DNA of 64,000 bases, from contig JAKMXF010000297.1 of assembly GCA_024704765.1 (NCBI GenBank), positions 186,001-250,000 of the forward strand, in the 5' to 3' direction. This stretch comes from Oopsacas minuta. Taxonomy: Eukaryota > Animalia > Porifera. Of the stretch, positions 47,682-52,368 are shown one piece after another. Under the pieces are notes generated by a model. The model made no database searches, was not told the origin of the DNA, and saw only the letters and a program-made list of their open reading frames with translations. Both the position numbers and the translations under genes were made by a program. Position 1 is the first letter of the stretch; the number at the start of each line of letters is the position of its first letter.

Positions 47682-52368
<4,687 letters not shown>

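Follow-up and report, generated by a model that had tools for sequence, protein, structure and literature searches.

MCM8 and MCM9 form a helicase of the germ line and of DNA repair, a heterohexamer that HROB activates, and human mutations in MCM8 and MCM9 cause ovarian insufficiency. An MCM subunit contributes its Walker A, Walker B, and sensor 1 motifs in cis. Its arginine finger works in trans, as does, unusually, its sensor II (PMC4619765). In the human MCM8-9 complex, the P-loop (Walker A) of MCM8 lies at the labile interface II, which in human and mouse is the site that powers unwinding. Replacing the P-loop lysine of MCM8 (K460A) abolishes unwinding, whereas the MCM9 mutation K358A merely reduces it, and the MCM8-9 ring is locked onto DNA by ATP binding, not by hydrolysis (PMC11055865). 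Also, the POI-associated MCM8 variant D521N, which alters the DKM motif, does not restore HR in human cells.

Recent knock-in work asks which functions of MCM8-9 require ATP. Mice with the Mcm8 alleles K453A, E512Q, or R579A are infertile because primordial germ cells are lost, but, in contrast to the null, they recombine normally in meiosis (PMC13167731). In Drosophila, a K>A change in rec leaves class I crossovers normal (10.1101/467134). In both mouse and fly, the Walker A lysine of MCM8 is required for helicase-dependent repair and not for meiotic recombination. An MCM8 that is P-loop-dead yet maintained in the wild would be a natural version of the lysine knock-in experiment. Here, we describe a candidate from the glass sponge Oopsacas minuta. 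Many core genes are reported to have been lost in glass sponges, in a paper that is silent on MCMs (PMC10280926), and our literature searches, which included the Oopsacas genome paper, found nothing relevant on MCM8 in sponges.

Orthology, structure, and transcription of the gene

The window (the whole 64-kb stretch of O. minuta DNA that we analyzed) contains a five-exon MCM8 gene on the minus strand, running from 52368 to 47682. The joined exons comprise 2466 nt, or 821 codons plus the stop, with no internal stops (Table 1). We used the 821-residue joined model for local alignment, the tree, and codon counts, and ran database searches exon by exon.

When exons 2–5 were compared to the PDB, human MCM8 was the best match for each of them. 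Exon 2 matched only MCM8 chains (5e-26). Exon 3 matched human MCM8 at 1.5e-31, other MCMs at 1e-23 or weaker, and the next eukaryotic MCM at 5e-19. The corresponding values for human MCM8 and the next eukaryotic MCM were 1.7e-39 and 3.5e-29 for exon 4, and 1.7e-64 (over 253 residues) and 1e-15 for exon 5. The MCM8-specific winged helix (PF25051, WHD_MCM8) was found on exon 5, and the MCM8 N-terminal domain (PF26065, MCM8_N) appears in the precomputed annotation of the exon-1 ORFs of syntenic relatives. Judged by these comparisons, the window gene is a true MCM8 ortholog, as a preliminary description drawn from the DNA letters alone had proposed. An MCMDC2-like paralog is ruled out by the best matches to MCM8, the syntenic MCM8 locus, and the intact Walker B; any resemblance to MCMDC2 is functional only. 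Separately, we considered two long hits from a representative search, P0157 and P0147, as candidates for MCM9, and comparison to the PDB gave archaeal MCMs as their best matches.

Nowhere else in the window is there a stretch that resembles MCM8, nor another exon that could supply a Walker A. Searching the DNA runs at 85% likeness returned only 35-base matches from the Walker B of other MCM genes, and no second MCM8. Protein searches found one MCM8 per related assembly, with only the window ORF at 100% identity.

We aligned four public runs to positions 47600–52450; three of these (X1, X2, and X4) are from one sample, and X5 is from another study. The DNA contigs from X1 and X2 had 0 differences from the window over 47641–52450. 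The contigs from X4 are RNA-like: they skip 51565–51622, 51235–51294, 50786–50836, and 48454–50505, each with minus-strand GT..AG ends. These spliced contigs had 0 differences from the window over 50837–50993, which includes Walker A, and over 47723–48364, which includes sensor II. The codons for the altered residues (ATG and AAT in Walker A, and CCA in sensor II) are thus confirmed by both kinds of contig. The absence of any stop or frameshift, also claimed at the outset, holds over the full 2466 nt, and the gene is transcribed, with all four introns spliced out.

A 307-residue ORF at 47685–48605 (minus strand) begins with an ATG in intron 4 and continues through exon 5, and it is a separate protein in NCBI and UniRef (P0175). 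Because the RNA-type contigs join exon 4 to position 48453, the public annotation seems to split MCM8, and surveys of orthology may miss or misjudge the gene.

Two other features of the window can be mentioned here. Directly downstream of MCM8 are two tandem mu-class GST genes (45589–47242, minus strand), of which there are 1–3 copies across the related assemblies. At 58525–58776 (minus strand), tandem copies of the hydrophobic unit VVVVVFVTIGNAVI form a stretch without stops.

Table 1. Features of the MCM8 locus, in window coordinates.
Feature	Position	Strand	Details
MCM8 exon 1	51625..52368	-	N-terminal domain and start of OB fold; Pfam MCM_OB; ATG at 52368 with in-frame stop upstream; first zinc-finger pair CSAC 51648-51637
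Exon 1/exon 2 junction	51564/51623 (joint in X4 contig)	-	GT..AG, cut +2
MCM8 exon 2	51295..51566	-	OB fold; Pfam MCM_OB 2.9e-07; spliced joints on both sides; second zinc-finger pair CLARGC 51524-51507
MCM8 exon 3	50838..51234	-	Start of AAA+ domain, contains Walker A; Pfam MCM 3.2e-25
Exon 3 borders	51234/51295 and 50785/50837 (X4 joints)	-	
Walker A (P-loop) GDPGQGMN	50934..50957	-	GGT GAT CCT GGA CAA GGA ATG AAT; Lys replaced by Met438 (ATG 50939-50937), Ser by Asn439 (AAT 50936-50934)
MCM8 exon 4	50506..50786	-	Pfam MCM 1.9e-38; Walker B 50720-50694; PS1 hairpin Lys 50645-50625; sensor 1 AAANP 50591-50577
Arginine-finger codon, first two bases	50507-50506	-	End of exon 4
Intron 4	48454..50505	-	2052 nt, GT..AG; X4 joint 48453/50506; interrupts the arginine-finger codon
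AIG1/GIMAP-like ORF within intron 4	50114-48663	-	Same strand as MCM8; Pfam AIG1 2.9e-09
MCM8 exon 5	47682..48453	-	Last base of arginine-finger (SRFD) codon, AAA+ lid, sensor II; Pfam MCM_lid 3.6e-24; WHD_MCM8 7.3e-27 (MCM8-type winged helix, ~47927-47685); stop 47684-47682
Sensor II ITTPHLESL	48066..48095	-	Arg replaced by Pro689 (CCA 48083-48081)

ATP-site residues in the window protein and its relatives

The one MCM8 ortholog that we could detect is intact, transcribed, and correctly spliced, and it has lost both the P-loop lysine and the Mg-binding serine. In alignments made with HMMER, Met438 and Asn439 are opposite K460 and S461 of human MCM8 (GDPGLGKS), and Pro689 is opposite the arginine of human ITTRQLESL. 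The residues, minus-strand codons, and coordinates in the preliminary description were therefore correct for both motifs. The Walker A of the window protein lacks the GK[ST] of a competent AAA+/MCM ATPase, whose lysine touches the phosphates and whose serine or threonine binds Mg, and its sensor II lacks the trans-acting arginine that is expected of a competent MCM ATPase subunit. The loss of the P-loop residues predicts that the window protein cannot bind ATP.

To put these changes in context, the Walker A lysine is present in about 170 of the 174 MCM-family sequences that we retrieved, and the remainder are artifacts of exon edges or of the regular expression, plus one fragment. Of the 67 MCM8 C-terminal matches in which the sensor-II motif was found, 65 have its arginine; the exceptions are the window gene and one of its relatives. 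The near-invariance of both residues across this survey places the changes in the window far from chance variation. The sole other replacement of the lysine among the 174 sequences is in P0079, a 106-residue MCM-family fragment whose Walker A reads GDPGLGQS.

Much of the rest of the protein is conserved. It retains the Asp-Glu of Walker B (IDEF), the asparagine of sensor 1 (AAANP), the arginine finger (SRFD), the zinc finger, the DNA-contacting lysine of the PS1 hairpin, and the winged helix. The preliminary description had listed most of these as remaining, and this holds for the zinc and arginine fingers, for the winged helix, and for the Walker B Asp-Glu, but the motif that it gave as IDEFEK is not fully canonical: next to Walker B, the conserved aspartate of DKM is replaced by glutamate (EKM), while 29 of 29 other MCM8s have aspartate. 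We found no new lysine or arginine within or beside the P-loop, and the neighboring changes that are specific to the window are Q440H and S463A. The residues with which human MCM8 contacts MCM9 are kept or conservatively replaced (R309>K, E314, V547>I, I610>M, and R697). We also considered the contact with HROB as a clue: human L387 is a glutamate in this clade, but the column is variable among other MCM8s, so it is uninformative.

Using exon-wise protein searches and contig look-ups, we found six related assemblies with an MCM8 ortholog (L001, L002, L004, L005, L007, and L008). They share a neighborhood, with NAA35 followed by MCM8, which has an AIG1-like ORF nested in its intron 4, and then GST genes. 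The five-exon MCM8 models are intact in all six. The tree, which has strong support, is (L008,((L004,L007),(window,(L001,L002,L005)))). Exact-sequence look-ups of eight window ORFs, word-index protein searches, and searches of JGI metagenomes found no closer relative to the window; the best JGI match had 59% identity.

The relatives differ from each other in their ATP-site motifs. Where the window has GMN in Walker A, AAANP in sensor 1, and TTPH in sensor II, both L002 and L005 have GKS, AAANP, and TTRH. L001 is the same as these two except for GKN in Walker A, and L004 is the same except for TTRN in sensor II. L007 has GKN, AAAHP, and TTRN, and L008 has GKS, AAASP, and TTLH. IDEF and SRFD are kept in all seven proteins, and the aspartate of DKM is a glutamate in all seven.

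At the codon level, all six relatives encode the Walker A lysine with AAG, where the window has ATG. The sensor-II codon encodes arginine (CGA or CGG) in five of the six relatives; it is CTT (leucine) in L008 and CCA in the window. Since the relatives keep AAG and mostly keep arginine, K>M and R>P are single-base changes on the lineage leading to the window. Only these two changes are private to this lineage: the L>Q change in Walker A is common to all six relatives, and S>N is also found in L001 and L007. Across the clade, S>N in Walker A occurred three times, sensor 1 changed from asparagine to histidine in L007 and to serine in L008, and sensor II changed from arginine to leucine in L008. 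Among the sequences that we compared, this recurrent erosion of the ATP site has gone furthest in the window species.

We noticed several other features of the locus in the related assemblies. The AIG1/GIMAP-like ORF is in the same place in all six (L001 9303–10751, L002 9618–11000, L004 9217–10590, L005 4923–6290, L007 6156–7490, and L008 6071–7483). The donor of intron 4 is GC (AG|GCAAGT) in L001 (8801), L002 (9052), and L005 (4346), and it is GT in the window, L004, L007, and L008, which is a switch of donor at a conserved intron. Intron 2 of MCM8 in L007 is 2492 nt, as compared to ~60 nt in the window, and contains an ORF with FLYWCH and MULE transposase domains (3075–4253). Finally, L005 and another contig, L006, encode the same C-terminal protein of MCM8 and are from one assembly (ERZ25069837), with different coverages of 232x and 67x. 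They may be haplotigs, or the one sample may have contained two individuals or species.

Selection on MCM8 and competing explanations

The explanation that we favor, with somewhat better than even confidence, is that the window encodes an MCM8 that cannot bind ATP and that has been retained by selection as a scaffold.

We compared changes within the clade at 83 alignment columns that are identical in at least 28 of 29 outgroup MCM8s. Seven of these columns are catalytic (the lysine and serine of Walker A, the aspartate and glutamate of Walker B, the asparagine of sensor 1, the arginine finger, and the arginine of sensor II), and 76 are not. By parsimony, there were 8 changes at the 7 catalytic positions and 23 changes, mostly conservative, at the 76 others (binomial p=0.0034, in a post hoc test with seven taxa). 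This excess, with the same caveat that it is post hoc and from seven taxa, suggests that selection on catalysis has been relaxed across the clade, and specifically so.

Such a pattern could be the beginning of decay. If the helicase function of MCM8 were dispensable, then K>M and R>P might be the first hits to the gene, too early for stops or frameshifts to have followed. Two radical changes at invariant catalytic residues on one terminal branch, a relaxed constraint on catalysis across the clade, and the reported losses of core genes in glass sponges (PMC10280926) all agree with this. Rates of substitution argue against it. Because dS is saturated (dS > 2) beyond the nearest relatives, we used near pairs and three-point branch estimates. 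Between the window and L001, dN/dS is 0.16 overall and 0.14 for the AAA+ domain, a degree of constraint that matches the rest of the protein, with about 0.14–0.16 in every domain; the values for other near pairs, whose lysine is intact, are similar or lower (0.157 for L001–L002 and 0.115 for L004–L007). With L004 and L007 as the outgroup, there are 34 unambiguous amino-acid changes on the window branch and 45 on the stem of its sister group (p=0.26). The corresponding branch lengths in the tree are 0.14 and 0.17, and the three-point estimates give the window branch the lower dN for each domain. Most of the other changes that are specific to the window are conservative. Overall, dN/dS is about 0.15, and the window branch is not accelerated. 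This argument has a limit, in that K>M and R>P share a single undated terminal branch: should the two have happened very recently, most of the signal in the low dN/dS would come from evolution before the inactivation.

A closer comparison comes from run X5, whose source (organism B) carries the locus at about 95–97% DNA identity. Among the best-supported 40 of the 136 differences between X5 and the window, those in exon 1 are 8 synonymous and 3 non-synonymous, and none are in exon 3 or at sensor II. The coding indels in X5 are of -21 and +3, both multiples of three, while the indels in introns and the UTR are of single bases. In the AIG1/GIMAP-like ORF, the differences listed between organism B and the window are 10 synonymous and 16 non-synonymous, so this ORF is evolving much faster than MCM8. 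The splicing of all four introns in the RNA-type contigs also speaks against decay, as do the intact genes in all seven members of the clade despite the motif losses that these have had of their own. Overall, MCM8 in the window appears to be under purifying selection and does not look as if it were decaying, and we consider early decay to be unlikely.

Could the protein nevertheless be a working motor subunit, with the methionine and asparagine in the P-loop either tolerated or offset by another basic residue? Archaeal MCM rings tolerate some inactive subunits, and the AAA+ domain of the window protein is constrained like the rest of it and has kept its sensor 1 and arginine finger, as well as the Asp-Glu of Walker B and the lysine of the PS1 hairpin. 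But the lysine is practically invariant in the 174 MCM sequences, the vicinity of the P-loop offers no new lysine or arginine, and the Mg-binding serine is gone as well. Furthermore, a change of this lysine to alanine abolishes both unwinding and ATP-dependent locking onto DNA in human MCM8-9 (PMC11055865). We consider an active ATPase to be quite improbable.

It is very improbable that the changes are errors of sequencing or assembly, or that the gene is a degenerate paralog beside a canonical MCM8: although the apparent split of the gene shows that the public annotation is of imperfect quality, three runs, of DNA and RNA type, agree letter for letter, no second MCM8 was found in the reads at 85% likeness, in the window, or in protein searches, and the NAA35–MCM8–GST locus is syntenic in all of the relatives.

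A putative scaffold and its relation to known systems

If the window encodes a retained MCM8 that does not bind ATP, how might it act? Its own pocket, which corresponds to site II, would be disabled by the replacement of the lysine with methionine and of the Mg-binding serine with asparagine. Because sensor II acts in trans in MCMs, Pro689 should damage the site to which the subunit donates, rather than its own: the arginine that would be lent to the neighbor's site is gone, and the contribution to site I would be partly lost. The preliminary description had suggested that the subunit cannot bind ATP itself and can still donate its arginine finger. The first part fits with the lost lysine and Mg-binding serine, and SRFD is indeed kept, but the donor face is probably weakened.

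We propose that, on DNA, the protein would still join an MCM-type ring or dimer, in which it would not translocate as a motor but would be a clamp or structural subunit. It might form an ATP-gated clamp with its partner, through the partner's P-loop. The retained MCM8 would then serve the helicase-independent role that was revealed by the fly and mouse alleles. In mice, K453A mimics the null for the survival of germ cells (PMC13167731), which implies that an MCM8 that is only a scaffold would need a different division of labor in sponges.

A broader and more tentative possibility, which we think is somewhat less likely to be right than wrong, is that glass sponges are a clade in the process of converting MCM8 from a motor into an ATP-independent scaffold for recombination. 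The stem lineage would have changed the aspartate of DKM, and then at least four descendant lineages would have independently lost different catalytic residues: the Walker A serine on three occasions, sensor 1 and sensor II on two each, and the Walker A lysine once. The ring-forming, DNA-binding, and winged-helix surfaces would have been under strong selection throughout. If this is true, then the clade is a natural separation-of-function series, and MCM8 does not need helicase activity for its conserved core role. The conversion might also be coupled to the loss or replacement of MCM9 and HROB, as in Drosophila. The window and its relatives could serve as a graded set of natural alleles for studying what MCM8 does without ATP, if its partner compensates, and how AAA+ pseudo-enzymes originate.

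As compared to vertebrate MCM8 (human and mouse; PDB 8S91 and 7WI7), the window protein has the same N-terminal domain, OB fold with zinc finger, AAA+ domain, lid, and winged helix. Exons 2–5 indicate orthology, and the MCM9-contacting residues have been conserved. It differs in the loss of the Walker A lysine and serine, the loss of the sensor-II arginine, and the change from DKM to EKM.

REC from Drosophila, which is part of the mei-MCM complex, is also an MCM8 ortholog from a lineage in which MCM8 has diverged, and its Walker A lysine is dispensable for its pro-crossover role in meiosis. However, the natural REC protein keeps Walker A as well as Walker B, and the lysine was removed by experiment, whereas the loss in the window is natural. 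Also, Drosophila has lost MCM9, and the partners of REC are MEI-217 and MEI-218.

MCMDC2 and MEI-218 are similar in that they are MCM-family proteins whose ATPase domains are predicted to be dead and that are retained for meiotic recombination (10.1101/467134). They are separate, highly diverged paralogs without Walker A or Walker B, in contrast to the window gene, which is an MCM8 at its ancestral locus with ~50% identity to human MCM8. The preliminary description had put the window gene forward as an inactive recombination MCM of independent origin. Given the orthology, the intact frame, and the evidence for selection, a candidate pseudo-ATPase is a reasonable description, but the gene is not an isolated case, as the ATP site has eroded across the clade. 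Because the window gene retains an intact Walker B and arginine finger, its origin is probably independent of that of MCMDC2 and MEI-218 and much younger.
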